Shown here one piece after another: positions 37,418-53,793 of a DNA stretch of 64,000 nt. How positions within the stretch are numbered: position 1 is the first letter of the stretch; each line of letters begins with the position of its first letter. The DNA lies in the sequence record NC_019526.1. One strand, written 5' to 3'. Under the pieces are notes generated by a model. That model did not search any database and had not been told where the DNA came from. It saw nothing but the letters and a program-made list of their open reading frames with translations. The translations under genes were made by a program, and so were the position numbers.

Positions 37418-38020
37418 ATGAAAAAAGTCAAAAAATTATACAAAGATTGGTACAACAAAATTAAACAACAACATTTAACAGAAAAACGTAACCCACAATA
37501 TACCTATGTGTTTAACTGGACTTTCAAATCTTCTGATAGTATGAAAAAGATTAAACCAGGTGATACATTCAAAACTGCTAAAGTACTAAAAGTATTTCTC
37601 AGAGCCAATAATATCTATCTCAATGAAGTAGGATGGAATAATAGAGGAAAAATTACCTGTACTAATAAAATTAAATCAGCTACCTTTGATGTATATATTA
37701 AAGATATTCCGTGCTCAATTATGATTAGTAAATTTTTTGGGGTATCTATAATCACCAATTATCATAAACATAAAAAAAATAATACATTAGAAAATTGCAT
37801 TGCATATAATGCACTGAATGATATCTTTGTACAGGATCGTCAAAAACATAAAGAATTAAACATCGATTACAATAACTTAACAGAAGAAGAAATATTTCAA
37901 CTAAGTACAGTACTTGATATCGATTTCTATAAAACCATCAAAAATATAGGAACAGAACTGTACAACACACAAAACCTAAACTGCAATAAACTCGTAGCAG
38001 TACTAAACAAATACAAATAA
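37418..38020 (+). CDS. hypothetical protein with EEExFQxST motif
   Basis: LTEEEIFQLSTV. Confidence 0.8.
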   Translation: MKKVKKLYKDWYNKIKQQHLTEKRNPQYTYVFNWTFKSSDSMKKIKPGDTFKTAKVLKVFLRANNIYLNEVGWNNRGKITCTNKIKSATFDVYIKDIPCSIMISKFFGVSIITNYHKHKKNNTLENCIAYNALNDIFVQDRQKHKELNIDYNNLTEEEIFQLSTVLDIDFYKTIKNIGTELYNTQNLNCNKLVAVLNKYK

Positions 38021-38042
38021 AACCAATGAAGGATTTAAGTAA

Positions 38043-38600
38043 ATGATCATCCAAATCAATAGTTATAAAACAAAAGAAGAACTGACCACCCTTATCATTA
38101 AAGCTATTCAAAAAGGGGAAAGTTATATCAAAATTCCATTAGATAAAACAAGCAATCGTAATATTGTTATTTCTCAAATTGATAAAGATTTTGATATCAA
38201 TATATGCTATATGGAAGAAACCAGTACTGATATCATTTACTCAGGTACTGAATCATTTAAACCAGACCAAATCATTACAGCAGTGTATAATTGCGTCCAA
38301 CGTTATTTCAGTACTGAACCAAATAAAACAATCAGAGAACAACAAAAATACAATACACGAAATATGCAAGAAGTAGAAAAACATAGTAAAAACTTCCCCT
38401 GTGGTATGACCGTCAAAGAATTAAAAGAATTAATTAAAGATTGGCCTGAAACCAATCAGTACGGAGAAGATACTTTAGTCTATATCAGTACTGAATCAGA
38501 TACGGATTGTACTGTACATTCTTCGTGGTGTTCATCAGTAAGAACTAATGATAATGGTACACTTGTATATGACTTAACTCTTGATACAGAACAAAGATAA
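38043..38600 (+). CDS. hypothetical protein
   Basis: AAGGA SD. Confidence 0.75.
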   Translation: MIIQINSYKTKEELTTLIIKAIQKGESYIKIPLDKTSNRNIVISQIDKDFDINICYMEETSTDIIYSGTESFKPDQIITAVYNCVQRYFSTEPNKTIREQQKYNTRNMQEVEKHSKNFPCGMTVKELKELIKDWPETNQYGEDTLVYISTESDTDCTVHSSWCSSVRTNDNGTLVYDLTLDTEQR

Positions 38601-38608
38601 TTAAAAAG

Positions 38609-38648
38609 ACTCCCCGTAAAACTCGATCAAACGGATTCTACGGGGAGT
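38609..38648. terminator. GC-rich hairpin bounding the gene run
   Basis: ACTCCCCGTA/TACGGGGAGT stem; A tract on left. Confidence 0.5.
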
Positions 38649-39074
38649 ATACTATATTGGACGATATGGTCATTATAGTAGACAATTTAATGGATATGGG
38701 TGATTCAGTACTGATAATAATGAATAGGAATTGATAAGAATAGTATAGTACTATTCAGTACTATTCAGAGTGAATCAGTACTATTAAGAATGATTAAGTA
38801 CTGATATGCCACTAAGTCCGTTTATAAAGTCGCACCCAGTGGGCTACATTTGTAACTATTCAGTACTTAATAATTCAACTCATCAATTATTACAAACCTA
38901 ACTATTTCAAATCTAATTACCCCATTAACTAAATCCCCAAATTATATATTAGCAAAAATCCCAGTACTAAATCAAGAAAAATCTGGATTGTCGATGAGAA
39001 AAAATCTGGATTTTAAAAATTTTGAAATGTCGTTCATAGTTCAGGAAAAAAATGAAATCATAACAAGAAAAGTG

Positions 39075-39103
39075 TTGACACGGACATACTGCCATTATAT
39101 AAT
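39075..39103 (+). promoter_or_regulatory. perfect consensus sigma70 promoter
   Basis: TTGACA-17-TATAAT. Confidence 0.85.
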
Positions 39104-39109
39104 GTAATC

Positions 39110-39590
39110 CTCAAGACGAGAGAATGTTCTCTCACAGAAAATGCGAAGAAGCCGAGTTTATCTGTCCCTGCGTTAGTGGGCTAACATTTGAATAGGACAA
39201 TACGTAGATGAGTGAAAAAGGTTCAAAGGGAAATATTTGATTCCCTGTAGTATAGTTAATGAGTTAGTACTGATTTAGATATAATCATTGAGTAGTACTA
39301 CTGTCGCAAAGGGAAACCTTTGGCTTCCATGGGGAGTGATGACAGAAGGGCATTATCCTCCATATAGAGTTACTGCGAATAACTCCGTAAGTTGGGTTGT
39401 GGCAAACCTCCTAAAATAGTGAATCTACAGTACTACTGATTGGTAGTACTGCTTTTAATTTAAAGTGTTTCTTTCCATAGAGAAAAGGTGCATGTAACTT
39501 GAACATGTGAACTACGGGAACAGTACTGAACAATTCCAGTACTGATTCCTCTCCAAATTTTGGATACAATAATGCTAGGCTTCAGTTAGT
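39110..39590 (+). ncRNA. candidate long structured ncRNA
   Basis: No ORF; many hairpins (CAAAGG-gaaa-CCTTTG, GAGTTA/TAACTC, CAGTACTAC/GTAGTACTG). Confidence 0.5.
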
Positions 39591-39596
39591 ACTGAG

Positions 39597-39715
39597 TGAG
39601 AATGATAATGATTCTCATTTGAATTGGATGAGAACGATTCTCATTTACTATTGCAAATGATAATAGATTGCATTTACGAATGGTTCTCATTCGCAGATGA
39701 TAATGATTCTTATTC
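39597..39715. promoter_or_regulatory. cluster of Fur-box-like sites
   Basis: GAGAATGATAATGATTCTC (16/19 to GATAATGATAATCATTATC) at 39598; 7-1-7 sites at 39629 and 39698; two weaker sites between. Confidence 0.75.
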
Positions 39716-39847
39716 AAAATTGATTTTTCCGATTTTTTCCATTAGTCACCCTTCAGCGTAGGGTTAATTTTTCCCCTGCCGAATCGGTTTTATATTTTCA
39801 AAATCTGGATTAATCATATCAGTACTAACCCAGATAAACAATACCCT

Positions 39848-39862
39848 TTTACAAATCTTTAC
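39848..39862. promoter_or_regulatory. CpxR-consensus direct repeat
   Basis: TTTAC-AAATC-TTTAC (GTAAA-N5-GTAAA on - strand); identical at 40220, 40833, 41067, 48856. Confidence 0.5.
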
Positions 39863-39889
39863 AAAAAGATTCTAAATGCGAATACAAAT

Positions 39890-39908
39890 GATAATGATTC
39901 TCATTTAC
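39890..39908. promoter_or_regulatory. Fur-box-like site
   Basis: GATAATGATTCTCATTTAC, 15/19. Confidence 0.7.
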
Positions 39909-40115
39909 AGTACTGAATACTTTTCCCCACGCCCTGGCGTCTCCGGTTCCTCCCGTCTATATAAACATTATACAGTACTGAAATATTAAGTCAATACTAT
40001 TTTTTCAAAAAGATTAAAATAAAATACTTGCAATCCTGATATTATTATATTATAATGTTTACAGTACTGAGAAAGTGCTTTTGCCAGCTAGGGTGCGGGG
40101 GAGTATGCGTTAAAT

Positions 40116-40134
40116 GAGAATGATAATCATTTAC
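40116..40134. promoter_or_regulatory. Fur-box-like site between convergent promoters
   Basis: GAGAATGATAATCATTTAC, 16/19. Confidence 0.75.
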
Positions 40135-40328
40135 AGTACTGGACGGATTTTCCCACCCTCGGGGGTCTCTTTTTGTCTATGTAGTAATTATACAGTACTG
40201 AGATACTATATCAAGTCTCTTTACAAATCTTTACAAATCACCCGGGGAGATTTTTCTTTACAATAAAAGTACTTGCATAATTCTTTCAGTACTGCTATTA
40301 TATATTCATACCAAACAGGAGAACTACC

Positions 40329-40499
40329 ATGAAATACGCATACTCTTATTTTATTGTGAACGGTGAACGTTTGACCATCGGCCAGGCAGCGGTAAAGCAT
40401 GAAATCATTTGCGATGATCTGGCGAAGATGCTACCAGGTGAAACGCAAGAGTTTTACAAAGGCTTTCAGAAAGTCACTGTGACCCGCTGCGAAGATTGA
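40329..40499 (+). CDS. hypothetical protein (56 aa)
   Basis: Own promoter, AGGAG SD. Confidence 0.7.
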   Translation: MKYAYSYFIVNGERLTIGQAAVKHEIICDDLAKMLPGETQEFYKGFQKVTVTRCED

Positions 40500-40562
40500 T
40501 CCAGTACTGGGGCAGCAATGCCCCTAAAACGTCCTGTAACGCATTGTAAGAGGTTTTAGAAT

Positions 40563-40790
40563 ATGGCTAGAGAAGTTAACGCAGGTGATATAAAGGCGGC
40601 TGTACTGCGTACACTGAAAGCATACGGCAGAAAGTTGAATGATCGCAACGTTCCCTATTATTTCCTTGCTGCTACTCATAAAATGGCAATCGCTGAGGCT
40701 CGCGGGTGGCTGAATGATCGCAGTACTGTAAAGAGTACCAGAACAAGAAACGCAATTGAGCGATGGATAAAAGAATTAAATCATTTCTAA
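40563..40790 (+). CDS. hypothetical basic protein
   Basis: GAGG SD. Confidence 0.65.
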   Translation: MAREVNAGDIKAAVLRTLKAYGRKLNDRNVPYYFLAATHKMAIAEARGWLNDRSTVKSTRTRNAIERWIKELNHF

Positions 40791-40949
40791 TAGTTCAGTA
40801 CTGAAATTATAAGGGGAGTTAATTAATTCCCCTTTACAAATCTTTACAAAAGAATTGTTGACATAGTATCCCAGTACTGGTATTATGTATTCATAGACAG
40901 AACAAGTCTTTGGCCCACCGGGTGCGGGGGAGTATCTATTAGATTGAAT

Positions 40950-40974
40950 GAGAATGATAATGATTCTCATTTAC
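40950..40974. promoter_or_regulatory. overlapping Fur-box-like sites between convergent promoters
   Basis: GAGAATGATAATGATTCTCATTTAC (16/19 and 15/19 registers). Confidence 0.75.
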
Positions 40975-41178
40975 TGTACTGAATATATTTCCGCACCCTT
41001 TTGGGCTTTTCGATTACTTTCTACTTGTTAATAAGTATACCATAATCAGTACTGAATGCAATGGTCTTTACAAATCTTTACAAAAGAAAATAATTATAAA
41101 AAGTACTGAAAAAGTACTTGACGTAATAATGTAGTACTGGCATAATACATCCATACCAAACAGAACGGAGTAACTATA

Positions 41179-41466
41179 ATGTTTAATGAAAATGATCATA
41201 TTGTTAAAGAGTTTTCTTTCAGTAAGCCTATCCATTTAGAAAACGGTGAAACGCTGGACAATAAATTTTATGGTAGTATTATTAAGCGTTATACATCGCG
41301 GAGTAGTACTGGAATTTTGTGGGAAGTGAATAAACAGTACAATGGTAATTCGCTGGTTGTCAATGAGTGGGAAAGTTATGCAGTAGCTGAAATGGATTTT
41401 TCTAACTTTATTACTGAATCTTTGAACGATGATATTTTTTACAAGTTCACGGCGGAAAGGGTTTAA
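41179..41466 (+). CDS. hypothetical protein
   Basis: Own promoter, GGAG SD. Confidence 0.75.
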   Translation: MFNENDHIVKEFSFSKPIHLENGETLDNKFYGSIIKRYTSRSSTGILWEVNKQYNGNSLVVNEWESYAVAEMDFSNFITESLNDDIFYKFTAERV

Positions 41467-41582
41467 AAAGTTTTAAAGAGTACTTGACAACATAAACCAG
41501 TACTGTATAATGTATTGCATAGAAAGGAGATTCCAGAATAATGGAATCTCCGATAAAACAAACTAATCAGGAGTTAATTACC

Positions 41583-42191
41583 ATGAACGTTATCGATACC
41601 ATCTATTCTAAATCTTTTATCGAACTGAATGAAGAGCAGAAAGAAAAAGCAATTGATATTATGCGGGAAATTGAAAATCAGGACACTACCCCTTATTGGT
41701 CAATTGATCTTGTTAACCAGATGAAAGAAAAATTAGTACAATATGGAATTGATGATTCTGAAATTTTGTGGTCTGGATTTTGTTCACAGGGAGACGGTGC
41801 AAGTATCAGCACTGAATCAATTAATGCTGAGATGTTTTTACGTAAGGTAAAAGCGTGGTCTAAATTTAAAGGCTTGCGTAAATTCATCTCCGAAGAAACT
41901 ATTTCTTTGAGTGTTCGCCGGGTGAGCCATCATTACTATCATGAATATTGTGTTAGTGGTAATGTTGAAATTGCTTATTGTGAAGATGTTACCGCCAAAC
42001 AAGAACAATTAGTGGACGATTTGCAAACTTTGATCACAAGTACTATTCGTGATTTGTCTCGTGAATTGTATAAAGATTTAGGGAATGAAAACGATTATCA
42101 AAATAGTGATGAAGCATTGATTGAATTGATTAATGCAAATGATTATAATTTCAAAGTTAATAGTACTGGTAACGTATTGGGGTTAGCGTAA
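41583..42191 (+). CDS. conserved acidic protein of the SGFxSQGDGA family
   Basis: F-x-EL...KEKAI, WSGFCSQGDGAS, HYYHEY, LYKDL..E.DY..SDEA; function unproven; track ATG 41541 lies in a 5' hairpin. Confidence 0.7.
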   Translation: MNVIDTIYSKSFIELNEEQKEKAIDIMREIENQDTTPYWSIDLVNQMKEKLVQYGIDDSEILWSGFCSQGDGASISTESINAEMFLRKVKAWSKFKGLRKFISEETISLSVRRVSHHYYHEYCVSGNVEIAYCEDVTAKQEQLVDDLQTLITSTIRDLSRELYKDLGNENDYQNSDEALIELINANDYNFKVNSTGNVLGLA

Positions 42192-42476
42192 TGACTAAAT
42201 TATATATTCGTTTCTGTTTTGCCTGGTACTTGTATAATCTGCAAAATGGTTATACAGTGAAATAATGCACTGATATACTGTAAAACGTCCTGTAAACGAT
42301 TATGGGACGTTTTAAGGAATATTAGTACAATGTTAGTACTGAATGATTTAAACGCCTTACAGTGGCTTACCGAGCGTTTAAAAAGTAATTGACGTAATAA
42401 TGTAGTACTGGCATAATTCATCTATACCAAACAACAAAGGGAATCAGTACTGATTCCCCTGTAAGGAGTAACCAAA

Positions 42477-42791
42477 ATGAGTACTAAAGAACTGAATGTA
42501 ACTACCAACACTTATAAGACGTTATGCGGTCGGTTGTTACGTGATTATTACACTGTAGAGATTGAAGAACGCGAATTACCCGAAGATAAACACTATTGGG
42601 AAAGTGGTGTTAGTCCTCTGCTACGGGTAACAACGTCTAAGCATGTTTTCTTTACTTCCCGCATTCATGTTAATAAGCGTGTTGAATTGACTTTCTCTTT
42701 CAGTGGTAGTTATAAAGATCATGAGATCTTGAATGATCGTATCGTTATTAATAAATTTATTCAAATGTATGGTGCGGATTCTTTACTTTAA
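42477..42791 (+). CDS. hypothetical protein
   Basis: Promoter-hairpin-AGGAG cassette. Confidence 0.75.
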   Translation: MSTKELNVTTNTYKTLCGRLLRDYYTVEIEERELPEDKHYWESGVSPLLRVTTSKHVFFTSRIHVNKRVELTFSFSGSYKDHEILNDRIVINKFIQMYGADSLL

Positions 42792-42877
42792 GTACTTGAC
42801 AATTCGATCCAGTACTGTATAATGTATTACATCAAAGGGGATACATAGTGTATCCCTGATATAAAGGAGTAGCGACT

Positions 42878-43237
42878 ATGCGAGCTTTTAACGTTTATAA
42901 GAATGACAAGAAAATTGATGTTGTTTATTATTCCGAAGTAATGACGGCAAAAGAAGTAACCGATTTGCTGAATAGCCGTGGTGAATACAACGGCGAAGTA
43001 AAAGCATTTCGGTCATTGAATAGTGCGAATATTCGCACAGTACTGAAAAATGCTAAAACTGTTTTATTCAATGATGACGAATATTTTAATAAAGATGTTA
43101 CGGGTATTAAAAACCTGGAAGATCTGAAAAGCCTTATTGGTATTAAAGGCAACGTATACAAAGTGGGGGAAGTCGGATCCCGCCATGAATATAAATTAGC
43201 CAATAGTGATTATAAATTTTCAATCCTGGTAATGTAA
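42878..43237 (+). CDS. hypothetical protein
   Basis: Promoter-hairpin-AGGAG cassette. Confidence 0.75.
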   Translation: MRAFNVYKNDKKIDVVYYSEVMTAKEVTDLLNSRGEYNGEVKAFRSLNSANIRTVLKNAKTVLFNDDEYFNKDVTGIKNLEDLKSLIGIKGNVYKVGEVGSRHEYKLANSDYKFSILVM

Positions 43238-43238
43238 T

Positions 43239-43442
43239 ATGAAAGTTTATATTTTGGAAGTGGAAGAATGTAATTCATATTCTTACAGTGGTACACTATC
43301 ACGCGTGGAGGCGGTATTTGCCAGCGAGAAAGAAGCCCACGCCGCTGGGGTTCAAAAAGTAAAAGAAGGCTATGAAGGTTATAGCGTCGATGCTTATGAT
43401 ATTCAGGGCGATCTTTCAGCACTTTTAAAGGAATTAAAATAA
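43239..43442 (+). CDS. hypothetical protein
   Basis: Packed + strand ORF. Confidence 0.7.
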   Translation: MKVYILEVEECNSYSYSGTLSRVEAVFASEKEAHAAGVQKVKEGYEGYSVDAYDIQGDLSALLKELK

Positions 43443-43657
43443 TGGAATATGAATTAATATATCACACTCGGTTATATGTTATTTTCTTTGAAATAACGTT
43501 ATGGGGAGTAAAGGCAACGATTTATAATAAAGACGTTGTCGACGATCAAGAATGGATCGTTGTTGCAGAAGATAAAACGCCTCATGATTCGTTAAGTACT
43601 GATTTTAAATTATGCCGTGAATTATTAAAGAGAATAAGAAAAGAGAATAATATATAA
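43442..43657 (+). CDS. hypothetical protein
   Basis: AAGGA SD, coupled. Confidence 0.7.
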   Translation: MEYELIYHTRLYVIFFEITLWGVKATIYNKDVVDDQEWIVVAEDKTPHDSLSTDFKLCRELLKRIRKENNI

Positions 43658-43690
43658 AACAAAGGGGATCGATTGATCCCCTTTGTTGTT
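43658..43690. terminator. bidirectional intrinsic terminator
   Basis: AACAAAGGGGATC-gatt-GATCCCCTTTGTT. Confidence 0.75.
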
Positions 43691-43849
43691 TCAGTACTGA
43701 ATTAATAATAGATACACTACGGCACCCTATGGGTTAGTGCCTTGTGTCCGGCTTATGTGGTTATTATGCCAGTACTGCGAACATAAGTCAATAGTTGATT
43801 TGTAAAGAAGTGTAAATGCACAGGAAGCATTGTAAGGCGTTAATCTGTT

Positions 43850-43857
43850 GCTGGTGG
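43850..43857 (+). other. Chi site (first of seven co-oriented)
   Basis: GCTGGTGG; also 45898, 50843, 52476, 54780, 56040, 57570. Confidence 0.85.
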
Positions 43858-44164
43858 CTGATAGTATAGAGTAGTGTTTTAGATTGATTGTAGGCCGTTG
43901 TAGGCGTTTATAGATAGTAAAGTACTGATAATGTTTAATGATCCTGGTATGTGCAAATTATTTTAATTTTTTTCGTATTGGGTATTGACGGATTATGTCA
44001 GTACTGGCATAATGTATCACATGAAGCGGCGAGATAGAAAATCATCTCAGTAGCTGGCCAGTAAAGCATACGAAGTCCTGGTGTCGCCTCAAACGGTTTT
44101 AGGTATCAAATAACACGTAACATCTAAACGTTGATGATACTGAAAACTAAAAAGAAAAAAGTAG

Positions 44165-44202
44165 TTGACAAGTACTAACGAGAATGAGATAATCTCTCTC
44201 GT
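44165..44202 (+). promoter_or_regulatory. promoter with operator-like palindrome over -10
   Basis: TTGACA-17-GATAAT; AACGAGA...TCTCGTT inverted repeat. Confidence 0.65.
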
Positions 44203-44246
44203 TGAAACAAACAAACAATCTTAATCAAAACTTAAAGGTGAATAAA

Positions 44247-44747
44247 ATGGCTAAACTGAATTCTGTGATCGTTGCTCTGCTGGCTGGTGATGTTGCTGCT
44301 CTGAATACTTCTTTCGCGTCGGTATCGATGGAAGATATGAAAACTGTTCGTAATAACTTTAACGAGTTTTACTCCAAGTTTAAAGCTGCTAATGAAGCTG
44401 CTGAAGCGGCGGCGAAAGAGCGTAAAGTACAGATCGAAACCGAAACGAAAGAACTGGTAGACGCCCTGGTAACTGCTGGCCTGGATCTGGAAATGGCCGC
44501 CGAAGTCGCCAGCCAGAAAATGGCGGTGAAATATCCCGAACTGGCTCCGAAGTCTGCAACTGGTAAAACCTGGTCGTTTGAAACCGTATTCGTTAACGTT
44601 GACGGTGAAAAACTGGAAATTGGCACCAAAGGCAACAAAGGCAGTATGAAAGCACTGGCGGCGGCACGCGAAGCAATTGCCGCAGGCAAATACAAAGATC
44701 GTGCTGAATGGATCGCCGCTCACGCCTGGACTGAAACCGAAGCGTAA
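44247..44747 (+). CDS. H-NS/StpA-like nucleoid-associated protein (divergent)
   Basis: SMEDM...EAAEAAAKERK...LVTAGLD matches the H-NS oligomerisation-domain pattern; strongly host-optimal, GC-rich codons. Confidence 0.55.
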   Translation: MAKLNSVIVALLAGDVAALNTSFASVSMEDMKTVRNNFNEFYSKFKAANEAAEAAAKERKVQIETETKELVDALVTAGLDLEMAAEVASQKMAVKYPELAPKSATGKTWSFETVFVNVDGEKLEIGTKGNKGSMKALAAAREAIAAGKYKDRAEWIAAHAWTETEA

Positions 44748-44768
44748 TAATTCAGTACTGTAATAATT

Positions 44769-44795
44769 AGCCTCCTGTAATTAGGAGGCTTTTTA
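44769..44795 (+). terminator. intrinsic terminator
   Basis: AGCCTCCT-gtaatt-AGGAGGCT then T run. Confidence 0.8.
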
Positions 44796-44826
44796 TTTTG
44801 TTCAAAAAAATATTTTAATTTATTTT

Positions 44827-45001
44827 TTGAACGGACTTCAAAAATCGGATATAATAATAAAGGGTGTTAATTACAGAGACCCCCATAGTGTTCGCTACGC
44901 TCACATAATGATCTTACTCGTTGCACTCGTAAGATCATTATCCAATCGGCCTTCGGCGATTTCTTTTTGATTTCCTACGGAAACCAAACGAAACCACCAG
45001 C
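44827..45001. other. promoter plus cluster of GNA-triloop hairpins (origin/pas-like)
   Basis: TTGAAC-17-TATAAT; - strand GC[GTA]GC, GT[GCA]AC, CC[GAA]GG, TTTCC[GTA]GGAAA; reverse Chi at 44994. Confidence 0.4.
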
Positions 45002-45397
45002 AAAGGCAGATCCCATTATTTGATTTAGTTAGTACTGCGATTAATTAGTAATTCATTGCACTACATAGCAATCAATTCCTTTTGTAATAGCTCACAGGAC
45101 GCAATAAGACGCGTTTAAATGACTTCCCTATGTAATGCCATTCCTTTTTAATAAGTCCTCTTAAAACGCGTTACAGTGCGTTATATGGCGTTTTTATAAT
45201 ACTCATCATTTCTTTTTCAAAAAGTACTTGCATTAATGATCCAGTACTGCAATAATGTACTCACTGAAACGCAGTAAGCGAAGTAAGTAAATGCAAATAA
45301 GTACTTGACAAAGTGTTGTAGTACTGGCATAATGAATACATCAAAACGAAATAGCAAAGGGATTCAGTACTGAATCCCTGTTAAGGAGAAAAACCAA

Positions 45398-45871
45398 ATG
45401 TTAAAACTTCATAAAGTACTTGATAACGCAGTTGTAACCGACTTTTTCCTGTCTCTTAACAACGAACCGAAAACAGCGAAGGAAATTGTTTTGAGTGGTT
45501 ACATCGCCAGCAAGTCAGAGATCGCACATTTGGAAAGTGCTTTCAAGTCCGGTGATGCATTATACAAAAAAATGCAAAATACCATCGAAGATTTGCAATA
45601 TATCAATTTACGTGATATTGTAGACAATAAATTGGATATTTCAGAAGAAGCACGCGAGAAGCTGGTAAGTAAATTATGTTACCGCTGCCGAACTGCAAAA
45701 TGGAATCGCATTCGTAGTATTATTACTTACGATTTAAGTAATATCGATTCCAAATCAATTCTTGAACGTATGTTATTAAATTTACAAAGCAATGAGTGGT
45801 TTTATACCGCCGCTCAATCTCATAGCGAAGAAATTGCATATATTCGTGATTATGTAATTTACAGCAAGTAA
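45398..45871 (+). CDS. hypothetical protein
   Basis: Promoter-hairpin-AGGAG cassette. Confidence 0.8.
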   Translation: MLKLHKVLDNAVVTDFFLSLNNEPKTAKEIVLSGYIASKSEIAHLESAFKSGDALYKKMQNTIEDLQYINLRDIVDNKLDISEEAREKLVSKLCYRCRTAKWNRIRSIITYDLSNIDSKSILERMLLNLQSNEWFYTAAQSHSEEIAYIRDYVIYSK

Positions 45872-45944
45872 TTAATAATTGATTAGCCATCATTAAAGCT
45901 GGTGGCTAATAGAATATTAATAACCTGTTAGGAGAATAATCTTT

Positions 45945-46214
45945 ATGAAAGGTATTAGTACTTTAATTGATAAAAACACTCATGTAAGACGTTCAATGAT
46001 TGCCGTATCACTGGCTAAAGTTGTTGCAAGTGGTTATCTGGTTTTTGTTGTAGATGGTAAATTGCAAGAGCGTTCAATTGCATTTAGTACTAAAGAAAAT
46101 TGCCGTTATATTGTATACAAGAAAGAAGCATACAAGATAGATTTACCAGCGAAACCGATCTCCGGTGGTTACAATGTTGAAAGTCTATATGAAAGGCCAC
46201 CGTATACTGCGTAG
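45945..46214 (+). CDS. hypothetical protein
   Basis: AGGAG SD. Confidence 0.75.
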   Translation: MKGISTLIDKNTHVRRSMIAVSLAKVVASGYLVFVVDGKLQERSIAFSTKENCRYIVYKKEAYKIDLPAKPISGGYNVESLYERPPYTA

Positions 46215-46291
46215 AATCGATTTTGAGCGGCTTTAATGAAATATAGGGTATCAGTACTGATACCCGTTTAAAACAGTGTAGGAGTGATTCT

Positions 46292-46462
46292 GTGAAGCGT
46301 GAACAAGCTTTATTGACGCCTGAAGAGGCAAGACGCTATGAAATGTTTTCAAACCAGGAAACGATCAAAGCGGCACAATATAACCCGGTTGCTTGTACAG
46401 TACAAAGAAAGAATTTTGTACTAAATGAAGTAGAAAGTATTATCAAATCAAATAAGGAGTAA
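46292..46462 (+). CDS. hypothetical protein (56 aa)
   Basis: AGGAG SD, GTG start. Confidence 0.5.
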   Translation: MKREQALLTPEEARRYEMFSNQETIKAAQYNPVACTVQRKNFVLNEVESIIKSNKE

Positions 46463-46468
46463 CAAGCT

Positions 46469-46741
46469 ATGCAAAATAACCGTCCAATGATCCGCAACAT
46501 GCTTTTCGTATTCCAGAAAAAAGTTAATGTAACTTCGGTAAATGGTGAACGTAAATTAAATGCAGCATTCGCCAAATATACCCAAAGCAAAAACATCCAT
46601 TACTTTTATCTTACTCTGAATGAGTTTAATGATCTGGTAAAAGAAATGTTTGTCAGTACTGAAATTGTTGCACCTGTAAGTACTGACACCATTTTGAAAG
46701 AGTGGGAAAGTTTTTACAAAAGTTCTGTTGTAATCGCTTGA
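46469..46741 (+). CDS. hypothetical protein
   Basis: AGGAG SD. Confidence 0.75.
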   Translation: MQNNRPMIRNMLFVFQKKVNVTSVNGERKLNAAFAKYTQSKNIHYFYLTLNEFNDLVKEMFVSTEIVAPVSTDTILKEWESFYKSSVVIA

Positions 46742-46795
46742 CAACATAATCCAGTACTGGCATAATAACTACATAGACCACAAAGGAGAAACATA

Positions 46796-46975
46796 ATGGA
46801 AACTGTAATTGCTACTACCAAAATCAATGGACTGGATAATGAAGTTTCATTGATCCATGACGGTAACGAATATGTTGTGTCATATGGTATCTATAAAACC
46901 TATCATGACGCTATCAATGAAGCTTTTGAGGATTATATGAAAGCAATTGAAATTGCTTATGATGATTATCGTTGA
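46796..46975 (+). CDS. small acidic protein (59 aa)
   Basis: Own promoter, AGGAG SD. Confidence 0.7.
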   Translation: METVIATTKINGLDNEVSLIHDGNEYVVSYGIYKTYHDAINEAFEDYMKAIEIAYDDYR

Positions 46976-47058
46976 AAGTACTTGCTTTAATCATTCAGTA
47001 CTGTATAATGTATTACATCAAAGGGAATGAATGATTCATTCCCACATAACCAGGAGTA

Positions 47059-47418
47059 ATGACTATGTTTGATAAAGTTTTATTTTCTGATAACACCTCT
47101 GAAACCGAGATCCCGGAAGCGGTAAAAGCTTTTGCTCAATTAGTTGCCCAGCGTCAAACTGATAATTACGACGGGCCTTATTCTTTTCTTACTGAGATTA
47201 GTAAAGGCAAAAAGTTTATTAAACTTATTCGCCGCGAGAAGTGGAAAGATAACGGACAATTAACAGGCGGATCGGTATTTGCCTTTATTGATCCCGATGG
47301 TAACATTTACAAATCAGCGACAGCTAAAGCACCAGCTAAAGGCATTCGCGGAAATGTTAACATCAACGGCGGCGGTGATGCAATCGGGCGTGATGGTTAT
47401 ATTCGTTACTTTCGTTAA
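47059..47418 (+). CDS. hypothetical phage protein
   Basis: GKKFIKL...SVFAFID...GNIYK.A..KAPAKG motif. Confidence 0.8.
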   Translation: MTMFDKVLFSDNTSETEIPEAVKAFAQLVAQRQTDNYDGPYSFLTEISKGKKFIKLIRREKWKDNGQLTGGSVFAFIDPDGNIYKSATAKAPAKGIRGNVNINGGGDAIGRDGYIRYFR

Positions 47419-47507
47419 TTGACAAATCTTTACAAATCCAGGGGTTGACTTCGGTCGCCCCTTTTGTTATTATATATTCATACCACAGAGCAAGTGGTTT
47501 AGCCCAC

Positions 47508-47625
47508 AGGGTGCCGAGATGTATCTATAGTTTAATGATTTTAAGTACTGAAAAATAATTATAAAAAGTACTTGCTAGACGTGAATTCTTTTAAGAATTC
47601 ACTTGTATTTGTGATTCAGTACTGC
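47508..47625 (+). repeat. 118-bp direct repeat, copy 1
   Basis: Identical to 57395-57513 except a 1-nt indel. Confidence 0.9.
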
Positions 47626-47661
47626 TATTATATATTCATACCAATTAAGGAGATTATCCAA

Positions 47662-47820
47662 ATGAATACACAATATGTGCCGGTGATGAATATCACTATA
47701 GGAAATGGAAAAGGTATGCATCGATTCAGTACTACAAAGAGTTATACTCAGCGTACATTAGAATCATGTGCAATTACTAAATGGCAAATCAAACATTACT
47801 TCACTACGGACAAGAAATAA
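47662..47820 (+). CDS. hypothetical protein (52 aa)
   Basis: AGGAG SD; the track start lies in the promoter. Confidence 0.65.
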   Translation: MNTQYVPVMNITIGNGKGMHRFSTTKSYTQRTLESCAITKWQIKHYFTTDKK

Positions 47821-47932
47821 TGATTGTAAAAGTATTGACAACGATAATTCAGTACTGTATTATAACTGGTGTAGCGTTCGTGTTAGCAGTTGCTATAGTG
47901 TTTAGTACTGTAATTGTATTGGGGAACATATC

Positions 47933-48238
47933 ATGATTAAAAATATTGAAGCATTCGATAAAGCATATCTTTACACCAGTACTTTTCGGAATAGCGATGG
48001 CGATCCGGTTGAATTTAAAAATGTAGTACTGATCCGGCCTGGTTTTGATATTATTCATATCTGGAATTCATGGAATCAAGCGGCGGGCAATCGCTATACT
48101 ATTGATAAAGAAATTTCAATAGAAGAAGCGTTAAAACTTCCATCATTGCCGGATCGTTTATCCCTGGCTAGTCGTGTGGAACTGGTGGGTGATACCGCAC
48201 AATATATCACGCATGAGTATGAATTTAAGTACTTATAA
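47933..48238 (+). CDS. hypothetical protein
   Basis: GGGG SD. Confidence 0.7.
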   Translation: MIKNIEAFDKAYLYTSTFRNSDGDPVEFKNVVLIRPGFDIIHIWNSWNQAAGNRYTIDKEISIEEALKLPSLPDRLSLASRVELVGDTAQYITHEYEFKYL

Positions 48239-48324
48239 GTGTTGACAACATAATTCAGTACTGTATAATGTATTACATCAAAGGGGATACATAGTGTATC
48301 CCTGAATTAACAGGAGTAACCCAT

Positions 48325-48573
48325 ATGTCTAGTATCGTTATCAATGAAACCTTATTATCTGTTACTTATGACAATGACAGTGTTTTTCCGGGTAAAGATT
48401 ATGGGGACGAAATTCCCGTAAAAGTTGAACTCGATCAAAGTGTCGGTAATGCCGACGATATTAAACGCACTATGGTGGTTAAAATTGGCGATATCACTTT
48501 ATTGCCCATTGATATTGATTATATCAAGTTTATGATTGATCGTGCAAATACCATTGCCGAAACCTTCAAATAA
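48325..48573 (+). CDS. hypothetical acidic protein
   Basis: Promoter-hairpin-AGGAG cassette. Confidence 0.75.
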   Translation: MSSIVINETLLSVTYDNDSVFPGKDYGDEIPVKVELDQSVGNADDIKRTMVVKIGDITLLPIDIDYIKFMIDRANTIAETFK

Positions 48574-48656
48574 GTACTTGACAACTGGTTTCAGTACTGT
48601 ATAATGTTTATCAAAGGGGATACATAGTGTATCCCTGATTTAAAGGAGATTCTAAA

Positions 48657-48845
48657 ATGGCAGTAGTATACGGTTATATCAGCAACTATGATTTGACTTT
48701 CCGGGAAGTCGGTACTGAATTAGGTGCAAAGAATGCAGCAACGCGAAACGGCTCGACCCGCGTAGGATATCGCAGTAGTATTAATAATATGTATATTGAA
48801 ACGCATATCCGCAACGATAAAAAGGGTAAATGGGAAAAAGTGTAA
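48657..48845 (+). CDS. hypothetical protein
   Basis: Promoter-hairpin-AGGAG cassette. Confidence 0.75.
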   Translation: MAVVYGYISNYDLTFREVGTELGAKNAATRNGSTRVGYRSSINNMYIETHIRNDKKGKWEKV

Positions 48846-49235
48846 TCTAATTCCATTTACAAATCTTTACAAAACCAGTACTTGATTTAATTATTGAGTA
48901 CTGGTATTATATATTCATTGGCAGATAAGCCGCAGCCCACAGGGTGCCGAGGTGTATCTATAGTTTATTGAATTGAAGTACAGAAAAATATTTCTTGCAT
49001 AATTCATTTCTTATGTTATAATAGTAATCACATAAATTAATTGGAGTGAACAAAAATGTTATTAGATTGGCTCAATACTTTATCCCCTGCTGCTGGCCGA
49101 CGCTGGGCTATCGGTTCGTCGGTTGCCATCGTTGTAGGCGTCATTGTACTTTTAGTGATGATTTTCTAAAAAGTACTTGCTTTAATGATCCAGTACTGTA
49201 TAATGTACTTATACCAAATAACAGGAGTAAAACCG

Positions 49236-49553
49236 ATGAAAGATGTAACTTTACCAGTAGTTCAAACTAACTTTGAAAACCAATTCCTGGCCGAAGTATT
49301 CAAGATTGATAATGGCGTTGTATCAATCAATTACGGTTTCAATAGCGGCGGTTATGAAAAATTCATTTATTTCGTTACTGCCGATGGTGGATGCCTGGCA
49401 ATTGATACGGTACTGAATGAATTCAGTAAAGTAGATTTTAATGATGATAATGATCCTCAGTGGTATATTGTCGGCTATGACGTGAACTATGAAGATGAAG
49501 ATCTTTATGATGATCATACTAATCAAAAAATTGAATCCGCTTATGGGGAATAA
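49236..49553 (+). CDS. acidic hypothetical phage protein
   Basis: AGGAG SD; DPQW...VNYED...IESAYG motif. Confidence 0.75.
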   Translation: MKDVTLPVVQTNFENQFLAEVFKIDNGVVSINYGFNSGGYEKFIYFVTADGGCLAIDTVLNEFSKVDFNDDNDPQWYIVGYDVNYEDEDLYDDHTNQKIESAYGE

Positions 49554-49853
49554 AAATGATCATCGTACTATCAGAGAAAGAAAAGAAATTAATTCTTTCA
49601 GTACTGAAAGAATATCCCAGAAATATGCGGGAGCCGTTTGAAACAAATGGTGAATTCGAAGAGCATTTAAACGATATCGATTTATTGATATCCAAGATTG
49701 AATCACAATAGTGATGTACTGTAAAACGTCCTGTAATCGATTATGGGACGTTTTAAGGAATAGCACTATGATTTATTCAGTACTGTAAAAAAACGCTTGA
49801 AAATTGATTCCAGTACTGTATAGCTGCATTACTGTTTAATGTGGGGTATTAAA

Positions 49854-50069
49854 ATGAAATATGTTATGGTAGATGAAATTACTAGCACGAAACCCAGTGA
49901 TGATTATAACAAATGGCTTGCCCGTAGCAATAAATGTATTATTCCGCACGATGACCGCGTATATCATTGTTATGAATGCGGGGAGATTATACCAAATGTA
50001 CTGGATCATTCAATCTTTACATATGATGATCTTAATTACGCTCATTCAAGATGCCTTGATAAAAAATAG
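49854..50069 (+). CDS. small Cys/His protein
   Basis: CYEC...HSRC. Confidence 0.65.
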   Translation: MKYVMVDEITSTKPSDDYNKWLARSNKCIIPHDDRVYHCYECGEIIPNVLDHSIFTYDDLNYAHSRCLDKK

Positions 50070-50144
50070 TTGACAGTATCATATCAGTACTGTATAATGC
50101 TTTACATAGGAAAATTATTCTCCCCATTATCAGGAGTAAAGAAT

Positions 50145-50372
50145 ATGTTTTACATCGGTACTGTTAAAAAAAATTCAAATGTAATTGAAGCATCATTGAT
50201 TTGTACTAACAATGAAGTGGCTGGCTATGATTATGCTCAAGAACGATTCATGAAACACTATACCGGTGATGATTCAGTGTCATTCGATTTTGAACGTATC
50301 GGTGATGGTGTTACAATTATGAAATTTGAAGATCTCCCTGAAATCGATTTTGATTTTGTCGTTACACTGTAA
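50145..50372 (+). CDS. small acidic protein
   Basis: AGGAG SD. Confidence 0.7.
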   Translation: MFYIGTVKKNSNVIEASLICTNNEVAGYDYAQERFMKHYTGDDSVSFDFERIGDGVTIMKFEDLPEIDFDFVVTL

Positions 50373-50471
50373 AAAAAGTACTTGCATAATTCTTTCAGTA
50401 CTGTATACTGTACTTATACCAAACAAAAGCAAATGGAATCAGTACTGATTCCCTGTAAAGGAGATAGACCA

Positions 50472-50723
50472 ATGTCAGATCGTATCACTCGCAAAATGGT
50501 AGCAGATAAAGTTGCTGGGCTGAATCTTGCTATTGACCGTCGTGGATTGCCTGAAAAATATCAGGTAGTACTGGAAGATGGCAAATTCAATATTGAATTA
50601 CAGCCGTCTCATGTTTATACTAAACCAACGACAGTACAAGGGAATTTAAGTACACGTGAAGCATATCTTTACCTCAAAGGTATGTTTGAGATCCTTCTCA
50701 ATAATGTACCATATAAAGATTAA
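50472..50723 (+). CDS. hypothetical protein
   Basis: Promoter-hairpin-AGGAG cassette. Confidence 0.75.
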   Translation: MSDRITRKMVADKVAGLNLAIDRRGLPEKYQVVLEDGKFNIELQPSHVYTKPTTVQGNLSTREAYLYLKGMFEILLNNVPYKD

Positions 50724-50726
50724 AGA

Positions 50727-50757
50727 AAAAGGGGAGACAATGAGTCTCCCTTTTTTG
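50727..50757. terminator. bidirectional intrinsic terminator
   Basis: GGGAGAC-aatga-GTCTCCC flanked by A and T runs. Confidence 0.75.
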
Positions 50758-50949
50758 TATTCAGTACTAAATTATATAGATACATTTATGCACCCTGTGG
50801 GTTAGTAGCTTGTTCTGCTTTATGTAGTAATTATATGATAAAGCTGGTGGCTTGTCAACACTTATTTTAAAATAAAAAGTACTGAATAGTACTTGCAAAA
50901 AGTATTCAGTACTGTATAATGTTTGTATTGAGATTAAGGAGTTCTTACT

Positions 50950-51507
50950 ATGTTAATCAAAATGTATCACGGTTCTAATAATTTTGATCATCGCTGGGGA
51001 TATCTGGGTGGAAAACCTGGCAATTTTCATATGGGTTTTGGACTATATCTAACTAACTCTTATCGCTGGGCTGATAATTATGGGCGACGTCATTATGAGT
51101 TAGATTTAGATATTTGTAGTACTGGTGCCGCACATAATGTATGGATTCCTACTAAACACTTTATGGAATTCATAAGAGTATATTGTACTAAAAAGTTTTA
51201 TACAATGTGCTGTAAAGAATTTAAAGACCGTGAATCTTTGAATGTAGAACGCGTTGAATTGCTTATTATCAATATGGAAAGGCACGTTACGAAAATCGCT
51301 AAACCATTTGCTGAATTCGTCGCTGCCTGGGGTTGTACGCATAGCATTGAAATATCCGGTAACTATGGTGGTGTTTGCGTGCGGCTTTATGATTTCAGTA
51401 TTATAAAGAATTGTATCATAAGCCAGGAAACGCAGGATTTTTATTATCCAGATGAATTGACAAGATATCCTCAAAAAACTTGTATTAATGATTCAGTACT
51501 GATATAA
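50950..51507 (+). CDS. ADP-ribosyltransferase-fold protein (H-Y type)
   Basis: MYHGS ... MGFGLYLT ... WADNYG. Confidence 0.55.
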   Translation: MLIKMYHGSNNFDHRWGYLGGKPGNFHMGFGLYLTNSYRWADNYGRRHYELDLDICSTGAAHNVWIPTKHFMEFIRVYCTKKFYTMCCKEFKDRESLNVERVELLIINMERHVTKIAKPFAEFVAAWGCTHSIEISGNYGGVCVRLYDFSIIKNCIISQETQDFYYPDELTRYPQKTCINDSVLI

Positions 51508-51752
51508 TGAATTAAATTAATCAGGAGGAATTATCTTAAATGAATAACCGTCAATTGATGATCGATGCATCTCGTTTTCGTTCAAAAGAAGAAAAGAGAA
51601 GTTGCATTAAATGGGTTTTGTCAACTTTCATTATTGGATTACTTATTGTTGCTTTTGTTTATAGTTAGTACTTGACAATATAATCCAGTACTGTATAATG
51701 TTTATCAAAGGGAATGAATTATTCATTCCCGATTAATCAAAGGAGTTTTGCC

Positions 51753-51977
51753 ATGATCTATATTATCAAAGTATCCCCGACCGTAGGTAAATCAGAAGTT
51801 GTAGCTGTTATCACTTCCCTGGAAGCGAAAGATCTTCATACCCCGTTTAATGTATGGGTGGAGGATAATTTCGGACAATTCAGTACTGCTGAATATATCG
51901 AACAATTCGCTGTCCCGGACACTGGTAAAATCAAAGTGGATCGTGTCCTGGATTTTGATAACAGTAATTACTTTTAA
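51753..51977 (+). CDS. hypothetical protein
   Basis: Promoter-hairpin-AGGAG cassette. Confidence 0.7.
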   Translation: MIYIIKVSPTVGKSEVVAVITSLEAKDLHTPFNVWVEDNFGQFSTAEYIEQFAVPDTGKIKVDRVLDFDNSNYF

Positions 51978-52063
51978 AAACGTTTGACAACTGATTTCAG
52001 TACTGTATAATGTTTATCAAAGGGAATGAATTATTCATTCCCGATTAATCAAAGGGGTTTATC

Positions 52064-52210
52064 ATGAAAGAGTATATCTTTGAAGTAACTTTCACATTTG
52101 GCCCGCACCAACTGATCCGGTCTTCTGGCTACAACCGCGAACAAGCATTCAGCAACCTTCGCCGTATGTACCCCAATGTCGTGACCTGGGTCAAGTGTGA
52201 AGAAGCTTAA
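52064..52210 (+). CDS. hypothetical protein (48 aa)
   Basis: Duplicate cassette, AGGGG SD. Confidence 0.65.
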   Translation: MKEYIFEVTFTFGPHQLIRSSGYNREQAFSNLRRMYPNVVTWVKCEEA

Positions 52211-52290
52211 AATAATTAGTCAGTACTATTGACAACGGGTGATAGTACTGCTATAATTATTTTAACTTATACGGAATGGAGTTAAAACAA

Positions 52291-52527
52291 ATGTTCAGTG
52301 TCAGCAAACAAGGCGACAAATTTCTGGTTCAATACCATCATTTTGATCTGGTATACACTCAGCCAGATTGTGTATTCAGTACTCAGGAAGGTGCCGAAAA
52401 GCACAAAAAAGCCTTGATCGAAAATAGCAACAGTGGTACATTAGATTTCATCCAACAGTACTGGAATGAATCTAAGCTGGTGGACGGTTATTCCAACACA
52501 GTTTATTATGTAGGTATCACTGATTAA
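52291..52527 (+). CDS. hypothetical protein
   Basis: GGAG SD. Confidence 0.7.
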   Translation: MFSVSKQGDKFLVQYHHFDLVYTQPDCVFSTQEGAEKHKKALIENSNSGTLDFIQQYWNESKLVDGYSNTVYYVGITD

Positions 52528-52629
52528 TCGGGAGTACTGTTAATGTATATGCCAATTATCATACCGTTAGCAGTACTGTTAATCGCCGCCGTTATCTGCG
52601 AACAATATCATTTGTTAGGAATGTAAACT

Positions 52630-52800
52630 ATGATTCAATGTGAATTGTCAGTACTGATCACGCTGTTCTATATGTTGGGGCAAAAGAAACAAGATATTTC
52701 TGGTGATAATGCATTATTGTATCAATCATTAGACCAATGGCAACGATCTGAATTAAGCAATGCATGGGCGAAAGGTTACAACGATAGTACTGCAAAATAA
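52630..52800 (+). CDS. hypothetical protein (56 aa)
   Basis: AGGA SD. Confidence 0.55.
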   Translation: MIQCELSVLITLFYMLGQKKQDISGDNALLYQSLDQWQRSELSNAWAKGYNDSTAK

Positions 52801-52987
52801 TTTAAAAAAGGGGTTGACTTACGCCAGCCCTTTTGTTATCATTAGTACATAGCAAGAACAATGCTCAAGCCCACAGGGTGCGGAGGTGTATCTATAGTTT
52901 ATGTTGGTCTGAATCATTAATTTTCTTGACAATTGGTTTAGTACTGGATATAATAGCCGCCATTGAATACAGGAGGATTTTAAAAAA

Positions 52988-53254
52988 ATGGCCTATCATA
53001 CACCACATAGACATTTCATTGATAAACGCGGTATGGCTTTTAAAGCAATGAGTGACAATCGTAACACACAAATGTACTTTAAAGATATGACGTTAGAAGA
53101 AGCTATTGAAGCTGTAAGGAATGATCGTAAGCTTTCCAAGAAAGTTGCATCAGTACTTAATGCTTTTTGGTTTGAACGTACTACCAACAAAGAATACAAA
53201 GAAAAGATGATTGCACTTGGTAAAGTAGTAAGAGAAGAAAAATTATATCTTTAA
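52988..53254 (+). CDS. hypothetical basic protein
   Basis: AGGAGG SD. Confidence 0.75.
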   Translation: MAYHTPHRHFIDKRGMAFKAMSDNRNTQMYFKDMTLEEAIEAVRNDRKLSKKVASVLNAFWFERTTNKEYKEKMIALGKVVREEKLYL

Positions 53255-53505
53255 GTACTTGACTATGTGATTCAGTACTGCTATTATATATTCATACCAA
53301 TTAAGGAGATAGACCAAATGAAACAAGCTAAATTTAATTCAGAAATTAAAGCAGCAAAAGCACACAAAGTACAGTTAGTAGTACTGGTTATTGTATCAAT
53401 CTTTTTGCTGTGCAACATCGGCTAAAATAATTATTACAGTACTATTGACAACCAACGATAGTACTGGTATAATTACTTTACCAAATAAAAAAGGAGTAAC
53501 CAAAA

Positions 53506-53781: not shown

Positions 53782-53793
53782 GGAATAATAATC

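Follow-up and report, generated by a model that had tools for sequence, protein, structure and literature searches.

The stretch of DNA that we analysed (hereafter the window) is 64,000 nt long and is identical (100%) to positions 186001–250000 of the genome record of the Klebsiella jumbo phage vB_KleM_RaK2 (JQ513383). Window positions equal record positions minus 186,000, and the whole record is 345,809 bp long. We focused on positions 39075–39590, which lie in a gene-free gap between the end of ORF322 (38600) and the next annotated ORF (40114). The latter, ORF323 (40114–40266), has no family match in PHROG or Pfam, coincides in part with a Fur-box-like repeat and a promoter-hairpin cassette, and lies in a region that is not retained in the related phage KP13-7. 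Because of these features the gene-free region probably reaches 40328; the first credible RaK2 gene start is at 40329 or later. The stretch had initially been described as containing no ORF, and this description held: the longest frames in 39104–39592 were a 43-aa TTG frame on the plus strand (39288–39419) and a 52-aa TTG frame on the minus strand, and neither had a PHROG or Pfam match. We refer to the sequence downstream of the promoter (39110–39592) as the leader. The features of the locus are as follows.

38815–38886, plus strand: putative physical left end of the virion DNA, i.e., start of the terminal repeat (homology to phage Muenster).
38977–39074, plus strand: A-rich, UP-element-like upstream region with two AAAATCTGGATT repeats (sequence reading).
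39075–39103, plus strand: perfect sigma-70 promoter, TTGACA-17-TATAAT (12 of 12 hexamer positions matched).
39110–39326, plus strand: 5' extension of the leader, specific to Klebsiella phages of Alcyoneusvirus (blastn).
39121–39136, plus strand: hairpin GAGAGA/TCTCTC.
39173–39186, plus strand: hairpin GTTAG/CTAAC, broken (GTGAG) in five of seven relatives.
39226–39246, plus strand: hairpin AGGGA/TCCCT.
39308–39323, plus strand: GNRA hairpin CAAAGG-GAAA-CCTTTG.
39327–39427, plus strand: conserved core of the leader, with hairpin GGGGAG...CCTCC (39331–39361), hairpin H1 and AACCTCC (39405–39411).
39367–39385, plus strand: hairpin H1, GAGTTA-CTGCGAA-TAACTC.
39428–39451, plus strand: hairpin H3, CAGTACTAC/GTAGTACTG, containing two inverted AGTACT sites.
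39428–39460, plus strand: H3 and the adjoining CTTTTAATTT; weak terminator-like or pause element (terminator scan).
39491–39550, plus strand: segment with H4 and H5, at the same place as H4 and H5 of Asteriusvirus.
39491–39507, plus strand: hairpin H4, CATGT/ACATG.
39516–39550, plus strand: hairpin H5, GGGAA-CAGTACTG...CAGTACTG-ATTCC.
39593–39730, no strand assigned: Fur-box-like repeat array (families D6, D8 and D10; repeat listing).
39748–39790, plus strand: terminator-like hairpin followed by TAATTTTTCC, overlapping a CCGCG-hairpin-GCMGWATC element (terminator scan).

Comparison with related phages placed this locus near a probable genome end. Base 1 of phage Muenster, the start of a 20,030-bp terminal repeat predicted by PhageTerm, aligned to window position 38815, and the corresponding RaK2 cut would fall directly after CCACTA. 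E. coli phage A4 has the identical context at its end (CCACTA/AGT, the slash marking the cut), and GAP32 has CCACTATA immediately before the cut. Terminal repeats of 21,525 bp and 19,736 bp are annotated at the homologous start in an E. coli and a Klebsiella aerogenes jumbo phage (the phages with annotated repeats of 19.7–21.5 kb are fENko-Kae01 and vB_Ec-M-J), and the terminal repeats of fEgEco12 have been confirmed by restriction digest (PMC13070987). Read depth in the public run X15 showed a two- to three-fold step at ~38.9 kb, with a contig end at 38821. GC content was raised across window ~39–58 kb, and AGTACT density tripled over exactly record 220–245 kb. The Muenster alignment points to a direct terminal repeat of ~20 kb in RaK2, from window ~38.8 to 58.8 kb, and AGTACT density, GC content and the depth step all fit it. 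A second copy of the promoter and leader would then lie 20 kb from the right genome end.

A perfect promoter had been reported at the start of the stretch, and the match was indeed exact: TTGACA occupies 39075–39080, TATAAT occupies 39098–39103, and the spacer measures 17 nt. Transcription is predicted to start near 39108–39111. The window holds 18 perfect TTGACA-17-TATAAT promoters, compared to 0.23 expected; of the perfect plus-strand promoters within the repeat, only that at 39075–39103 has a spacer free of CAGTACTG. Its −35 and −10 hexamers were invariant in seven Alcyoneusvirus genomes, every substitution being found in the spacer, and the upstream region (38977–39074) was 93–100% identical in six relatives. 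A third copy of AAAATCTGGATT occurs at 39800. Because the start of the terminal repeat aligns to ~38815, the promoter at 39075–39103 would be the leftmost of the virion DNA, pointing inward from ~260 bp inside the putative left end; the flagged stretch as a whole lies about 260–775 bp inside that end.

All seven inverted repeats that the initial annotation had listed were found in 39110–39592. Folding of this segment was better than that of dinucleotide shuffles on both strands (z = −3.55 for the plus strand, −4.25 for the minus strand). Every RaK2 stem is a perfect Watson-Crick inverted repeat; thus, the thermodynamics of RaK2 alone cannot tell an RNA from palindromes that matter at the DNA level. 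The arms of H3 and H5 are copies of AGTACT, a palindrome present genome-wide in 937 copies (117 expected) and located mostly within early-promoter spacers. CCUCC motifs, of which RaK2 has two and Asteriusvirus three, might be read as mimics of the 16S rRNA tail, but they are paired with purine runs in predicted stems.

The first candidate terminator in the leader is H3, a 10-bp hairpin followed by CTTTTAATTT; relatives showed loop insertions and loss of the U-run. An H3-type element followed by TTTTAATCTAAAG was found in Asteriusvirus (L008, 533–580), and its U-run was broken (ATATTAAT) in three of nine phages. Farther downstream the stretch continues, as had been noted from the outset, into a Fur-box-like array that begins at 39593, and an A/T-rich stretch follows this array. 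The terminator-like hairpin at 39748–39790 (terminator-like site 39748–39773) is a possible distal 3' end, from which an RNA of ~660 nt would be predicted. Homologues of the CCGCG-hairpin-GCMGWATC element at this place had differing stems in six genera. Cumulative GC skew, an uninformative test, gave no origin-like switch at record ~225 kb.

RaK2-like jumbo phages from at least six genera retain this layout of the left end. The common order is the DNA end, a strong sigma-70 promoter at ~270–380 bp, an ORF-less leader of 280–430 nt with many AGTACT hairpins, and a repeat array; past the array come the conserved CCGCG-hairpin element and then promoter-hairpin cassettes, with the first gene at 1.3–1.8 kb. 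The genomes with this layout included nine Asteriusvirus phages (vB_Ec-M-J, 121Q, A4, EJP2, JNE01, UE-S1, ph0011, SHEFM2K and G17), Munch, fENko-Kae01, Eneladusvirus phages BF and pEa_SNUABM_12, Mimasvirus phages GAP32 and XbC2, and Erwinia phage Hallingskeid. The array was Fur-box-like in RaK2, Munch and Hallingskeid, and consisted of different iterons (GGCTAGA/ACGGCTAAACGG) in the remaining phages, Asteriusvirus among them. A reading of the GGA-rich Asteriusvirus iterons as a CsrA sponge was dropped because the RaK2 repeat at that place differs. RaK2 39327–39592 was collinear with the entire Asteriusvirus leader, and the core was also collinear with the start of the Munch leader. The RaK2 leader holds the same position as its counterparts, behind the first sigma-70 promoter in the left terminal repeat and before the repeat array.

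Among the Klebsiella phages of Alcyoneusvirus, variation in the leader was modular. Matches to 39110–39326 (blastn) were confined to seven distinct Alcyoneusvirus genomes (nine records), with 88–98% identity, and 39327–39427 was 99–100% identical in K64-1, Muenster and KP13-7. The leader was 95–100% identical, and this included KP13-7 although its downstream cassettes have been replaced. Frameshifting indels (1, 2, 4, 16 and 19 nt) were found across the leader in relatives, which fits a non-coding sequence. Phage phiKp_21 had a 30-nt deletion (39306–39335) that removes the GNRA hairpin, three of the seven Alcyoneusviruses had a 19-nt insertion in the H3 loop, and the segment 39466–39490 was replaced among relatives. 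A pattern scan of metagenomes recovered one close relative; the metagenome relative carries a 16-nt deletion (39521–39536) comprising one H5 arm, and an A-to-G change at 39492 that retains a G-U pair in H4. Pattern scans of IMG/VR returned random matches only for a 15-mer, and either 121Q itself or nothing for two gapped patterns. Changes at paired positions in the seven Alcyoneusvirus genomes, which differ by few substitutions, comprised no both-sided changes, five wobble-preserving changes and several broken pairs. This variation is too small to test structure, that of the 5' extension included, as it offers no compensatory changes.

For the orthologous leader of Asteriusvirus, RNAalifold of the nine sequences gave 86 pairs with 94.2% of cells paired, compared to 34–52% pairing in slid controls, and 12 pairs were changed on both sides, a number reached by none of 500 shuffles. 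Consensus energy was −80.8 on the plus strand vs −59.9 on the minus strand (a gap of 21 kcal/mol), and 99 G-U cells would turn into A-C mismatches if the opposite strand were read, with the caveat that the plus strand had been used to predict the structure. Single-sequence z-scores were −5.35 (plus) vs −3.29 (minus). The 27-pair H5 helix (helix 9) was 99.6% paired, and its changes were mostly wobble-preserving. For XbC2 and Munch, z-scores were ~−3 on both strands.

We used a covariance model built from the 5' half of the nine-phage (E. coli) Asteriusvirus alignment, which comprises H1, AACCUC, and H3 with its tail. The best match of this model in the window was 39362–39460 on the plus strand (25.8 bits, rough E ~5e-4), and within the RaK2 leader it is confined to the 3' half. 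All six other Alcyoneusviruses matched at the same place and on the same strand (rough E 2e-5 to 3e-3). Across Asteriusvirus and Alcyoneusvirus, six of the eight pairs of H1 were changed on both sides (0 of 500 shuffles reached this value). H1 exists in four stem versions over two genera while its loop, CNGCNAA, is invariant. A model-guided cross-genus alignment placed the RaK2-type sequences inconsistently, and pair counts were hence made without this alignment. The compensatory and G-U pairs of Asteriusvirus, the covariance-model match and the covariation of H1 all argue for RNA-level selection on the promoter strand. For the orthologous Asteriusvirus leader such selection is well supported; in RaK2 it is supported over part of the leader. 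The initial annotation had called the stretch a non-coding structured RNA and had named covariation as a check. This call gained the 12 Asteriusvirus pairs, the six H1 pairs and the model match at 39362–39460, but it gained nothing within Alcyoneusvirus, where no pair was changed on both sides.

Public data sets also touched on expression. Contigs from three metatranscriptome runs and one run labelled "RNA?" lay over 38821–42222, and none lay over 37500–38820. These contigs include 38821–39091, upstream of the promoter, and end at the virion DNA end, and public reads showed the two-fold rise in depth that a terminal repeat would produce. On these grounds we read the contigs as DNA carry-over and rejected them as a sign of expression. 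The suggestion that the transcript is immediate-early was upheld in part and indirectly, in that a promoter of the host sigma-70 type stands first inside the left end and that the corresponding PA5oct region is transcribed early (PMC7318152). In PA5oct, early infection brings strong transcription of the terminal repeat, which contains two abundant ORF-less RNAs (PMC7318152). For CBB, fEgEco12 and Sharanji, published accounts cover the repeats as well as RpoD-like promoters with UP elements, but not the leader; a full-text literature search found no description of a RaK2-type left-end leader.

We consider it about an even chance (probability roughly 0.5) that the stretch is the promoter and untranslated, structured leader of the leftmost early transcription unit, with a fold that works in cis on the first transcript. 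Host RNA polymerase would fire at the promoter once the left DNA end is inside the cell. The folded RNA would be at least ~345 nt long, extending to the weak terminator-like hairpin at 39428–39460, and might reach ~660 nt on read-through of the Fur-box-like array. The conserved fold would act in cis either on stability or processing, or on pausing or read-through before the polymerase meets the repeat array and the head-on promoters. Several observations count against this reading. The minus strand of RaK2 folds as well as the plus strand, compensatory pairs within Alcyoneusvirus number zero while several pairs are broken, and hairpins or arms were gained or lost in close relatives (the 30-nt deletion, the 19-nt insertion and the 16-nt deletion). 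In addition, the U-run of H3 was not kept in three of nine Asteriusviruses, and the AGTACT density of the leader (14 per kb) fits a cluster of DNA-level binding sites.

Some of these observations favour a different reading, in which the stretch is chiefly a DNA-level end element that works with the neighbouring array in packaging, replication or protection of the end, and in which transcription is incidental or activating only. The location 260–775 bp from the putative terminus is in keeping with such an element, as is the density of AGTACT: the genome as a whole has 2.7 per kb, compared to 14 per kb for the leader and 23 per kb for the sequence immediately left of the cut site. The perfect inverted repeats and equal folding of both strands in RaK2, the indels that add or remove entire AGTACT arms, and one hairpin loop that is flipped between genomes, as occurs in DNA palindromes, point the same way, and the iterons adjacent to the Asteriusvirus leader resemble the arrays that T5-like and T7-like phages carry near their ends. 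In contrast, the pairing in Asteriusvirus is specific to the plus strand, as measured by its G-U cells and the consensus energy gap, and wobble-preserving changes dominate its almost fully paired H5 helix. The promoter hexamers are constrained, and GC skew lacks an origin-like switch. On balance we regard the DNA-level reading as rather doubtful.

It appears unlikely that the locus produces a free-standing, trans-acting ncRNA of ~345 nt that runs from the promoter to 39428–39460, is made on DNA entry, and acts on host or phage targets. A promoter combined with a terminator-like hairpin and CTTTTAATTT would suit such an RNA, H3 and its tail are positionally conserved in Asteriusvirus, and the invariant CNGCNAA loop on a covarying stem, together with hairpins bearing GNRA tetraloops, suggests recognition elements; the abundant ORF-less RNAs in the PA5oct terminal repeat (PMC7318152) offer a parallel. 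However, an end at H3 fits poorly with the U-run broken in three of nine Asteriusviruses, with the 19-nt loop insertion in three of seven Alcyoneusviruses, and with the conservation of Asteriusvirus structure well past H3, through H4 and H5. A target, a partner or an Rfam family for a trans-acting RNA was not found. Rfam 15 at gathering thresholds gave no match in the whole window; over 38800–40200 the matches were weak only (RAGATH-23, 17.3 bits vs a threshold of 92.6, minus strand; ylbH, 16.3 bits vs a threshold of 50), and Rfam at permissive thresholds together with a tRNA/tmRNA scan returned nothing. The more specific idea in the initial annotation, that the RNA is a protein sponge or an anti-defence RNA, drew no support of any kind from these searches, which yielded neither target, partner nor Rfam family.

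Two further readings can be dismissed. The window contains a large structured RNA at 5250–5950 of a multi-copy family, and the leader resembles it in its similar size, its own promoter, its many hairpins and its lack of ORFs; the heading of the initial annotation also ties the two together. It is nevertheless most improbable that the leader is a copy of this family, and we rejected membership, as BLAST and nhmmer failed to link the two in either direction. BLAST of 5250–5950 against the whole genome found a paralog at record 279671–280306 (85%) and left the leader unmatched; the leader, searched by BLAST and as an nhmmer profile, matched only itself and is single-copy in the 345,809-bp record; and a two-copy nhmmer profile of the family had no match in 38501–40500. 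Equally improbable is that the leader encodes one or more small proteins, such as the 43-aa TTG frame (39288–39419) annotated in the K64-1 RefSeq record. That over-called record, which places 11 tiny CDS in the gap, is the only one examined with gene annotation in the leader, and two of the indels within the frame (3 nt and 30 nt) have lengths divisible by three; but the TTG start lacks a Shine-Dalgarno sequence, the 43-aa frame carries a 1-nt deletion and a 4-nt insertion in OU509535, Asteriusvirus and Munch have no conserved ORF in the homologous position, and all three substitutions in a 10-codon ATG frame at 39209 are non-synonymous. With PHROG and Pfam matches absent, we rejected the small-protein reading.

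Returning to the reading of the stretch as a cis-acting leader, we also put forward a broader and tentative proposal, possible rather than probable in our judgement: the leader might be a functional RNA in all RaK2-like jumbo phages and the first RNA made from the entering end. Its hairpins, with their CNGCNAA and GNRA loops, might recruit a host or virion factor. Such recruitment could let RNA polymerase read through the array and the promoters that face it, or could serve to prime or activate replication or packaging at the adjacent iteron or Fur-box-like array. RaK2-like jumbo phages are candidate therapeutic agents against Klebsiella and E. coli, and the onset of their infection is poorly understood. 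A strong host-type promoter with a conserved non-coding leader at the tip of the terminal repeat is a small, concrete target for study of the first minute of infection, and it bears on DNA entry, on the early transcription programme, and on the neighbouring Fur-box-like and iteron arrays.

Known antitermination leaders (lambda nut boxA/boxB, HK022 put and rrn boxA) carry short conserved hairpins just downstream of early promoters. The GNRA-type hairpin at RaK2 39308–39323 is a likeness to these leaders that is not diagnostic, and the GNRA-type hairpin of Asteriusvirus (CUGUC-GUGA-GACAG) showed one compensatory change. A point of difference is that phiKp_21 has lost the GNRA hairpin of RaK2. 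A search for boxA with up to two mismatches found none on the plus strand of 38800–41200, and we rejected antitermination of the boxA type in RaK2 on this basis. Exact rrn-type boxA sequences occur further downstream in the end region of BF, GAP32 and XbC2.

A second comparison is with ncRNA001 and ncRNA002 of the Pseudomonas jumbo phage PA5oct, which are ORF-less RNAs of 236 and 451 nt with unknown function (PMC7318152). Compared by published description, these RNAs of a distant relative resemble the RaK2 leader in lying inside a long direct terminal repeat and in being highly transcribed early (PMC7318152). They differ in lying 8.3 and 22 kb into a 39-kb repeat rather than at its left tip, and a known promoter is unreported for them (PMC7318152). 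Within RaK2 itself, the RNA at 5250–5950 shares with the leader a similar length, its own promoter, and the lack of an ORF and of an Rfam family; that RNA has paralogs, whereas the leader is single-copy per repeat.

The left end of phage T7 provides the third comparison. In T7, the strong sigma-70 promoters A1–A3 lie within the first several hundred bp and point inward, a structured untranslated leader precedes the first gene, and this leader adjoins a terminal repeat that carries short repeat arrays. The RaK2 leader lacks sequence similarity to that of T7 and is longer (0.35–0.66 kb to the possible 3' ends, and >1 kb to the first gene). It also differs from T7 in lying inside a 20-kb repeat, in running into a Fur-box-like array, and in facing leftward promoters. 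Nevertheless, the two left ends share a common plan: as in T7, RaK2 has a host-type promoter close to its putative end, at a distance of 260 bp, which points inward and is followed by an untranslated leader.

The palindrome AGTACT, mostly in the form CAGTACTG, occurs 937 times in the whole RaK2 record, against 117 copies expected. Its density reaches 30–39 per 5 kb within the terminal repeat (window 39000–59000), compared with ~10–15 per 5 kb elsewhere. Most early promoters carry AGTACT between the −35 and −10 elements; among the perfect plus-strand promoters of the terminal repeat, the one at 39075 alone lacks it. AGTACT resembles an operator for some regulator. The features near the leader are as follows.

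38814/38815: left end of the virion DNA (inferred), with the cut following CCACTA.
38979, 39001 and 39800: three copies of AAAATCTGGATT.
39755–39790: CCGCG-hairpin-GC(A/C)G(A/T)ATC element, right of the repeat array.
40114–40266: annotated ORF323.

Within 38700–38820, five AGTACT sites lie in the 110 bp directly left of the inferred cut. This array is highly variable, with only 53–81% identity among relatives, whereas the first 72 bp of the terminal repeat are 93–100% identical. In the public sequencing run X19, a single 151-nt contig links 38821 to 39102 on opposite strands, as a fold-back at the DNA end; this link could have arisen from misassembly of short contigs.

The three AAAATCTGGATT copies bracket the module of promoter, leader and Fur-box array, and related AATCTGGA motifs were observed at corresponding positions in the other genera. 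The CCGCG element was found at homologous places in the E. coli Asteriusvirus vB_Ec-M-J (L008), in BF, GAP32 and XbC2, and in relatives L010 and L013. The element is conserved, and its stems differ across six genera (AGGG/CCCT, GGGG/CCCC, CGGAA/TTCCG, CTAG/CTAG, CTGG/CCAG and CAGGG/CCCTG). ORF323 is probably not a real gene, because its start falls within a Fur-box-like repeat, the ORF overlaps a promoter-hairpin cassette, it had no family match, and it is not conserved in the Klebsiella relative KP13-7.

Two further features were located in the relatives.

Alignment of Asteriusvirus leaders (A1), columns 210–229 (e.g., ~589–608 in vB_Ec-M-J): hairpin CCACCAGC-ACAA-GCTGGTGG.
BF (L017) ~1396, GAP32 (L018) ~3212 and XbC2 (L020) ~1336: exact rrn-type boxA.

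The ACAA loop reads TTGT, in flipped orientation, in 121Q, JNE01, UE-S1 and G17, as if the CCACCAGC/GCTGGTGG palindrome had been inverted. The exact boxA (GCTCTTTAACAA or GCTCTTTAAAAAC) of Serratia phage BF, Cronobacter phage GAP32 and Xanthomonas phage XbC2 lies ~30 nt downstream of a promoter and before the first gene; none was found in the RaK2 end region.

The E. coli Asteriusviruses contain GGCTAGA/ACGGCTAAACGG iterons (730–920 in vB_Ec-M-J), located exactly where the Fur-box-like repeats lie in RaK2 (39593–39730), Munch and Hallingskeid. Arrays that match these E. coli-phage iterons occur close to the genome ends in T5-like phages of Aeromonas and Vibrio, as well as in the T7-like phages phiKT and PGT2.
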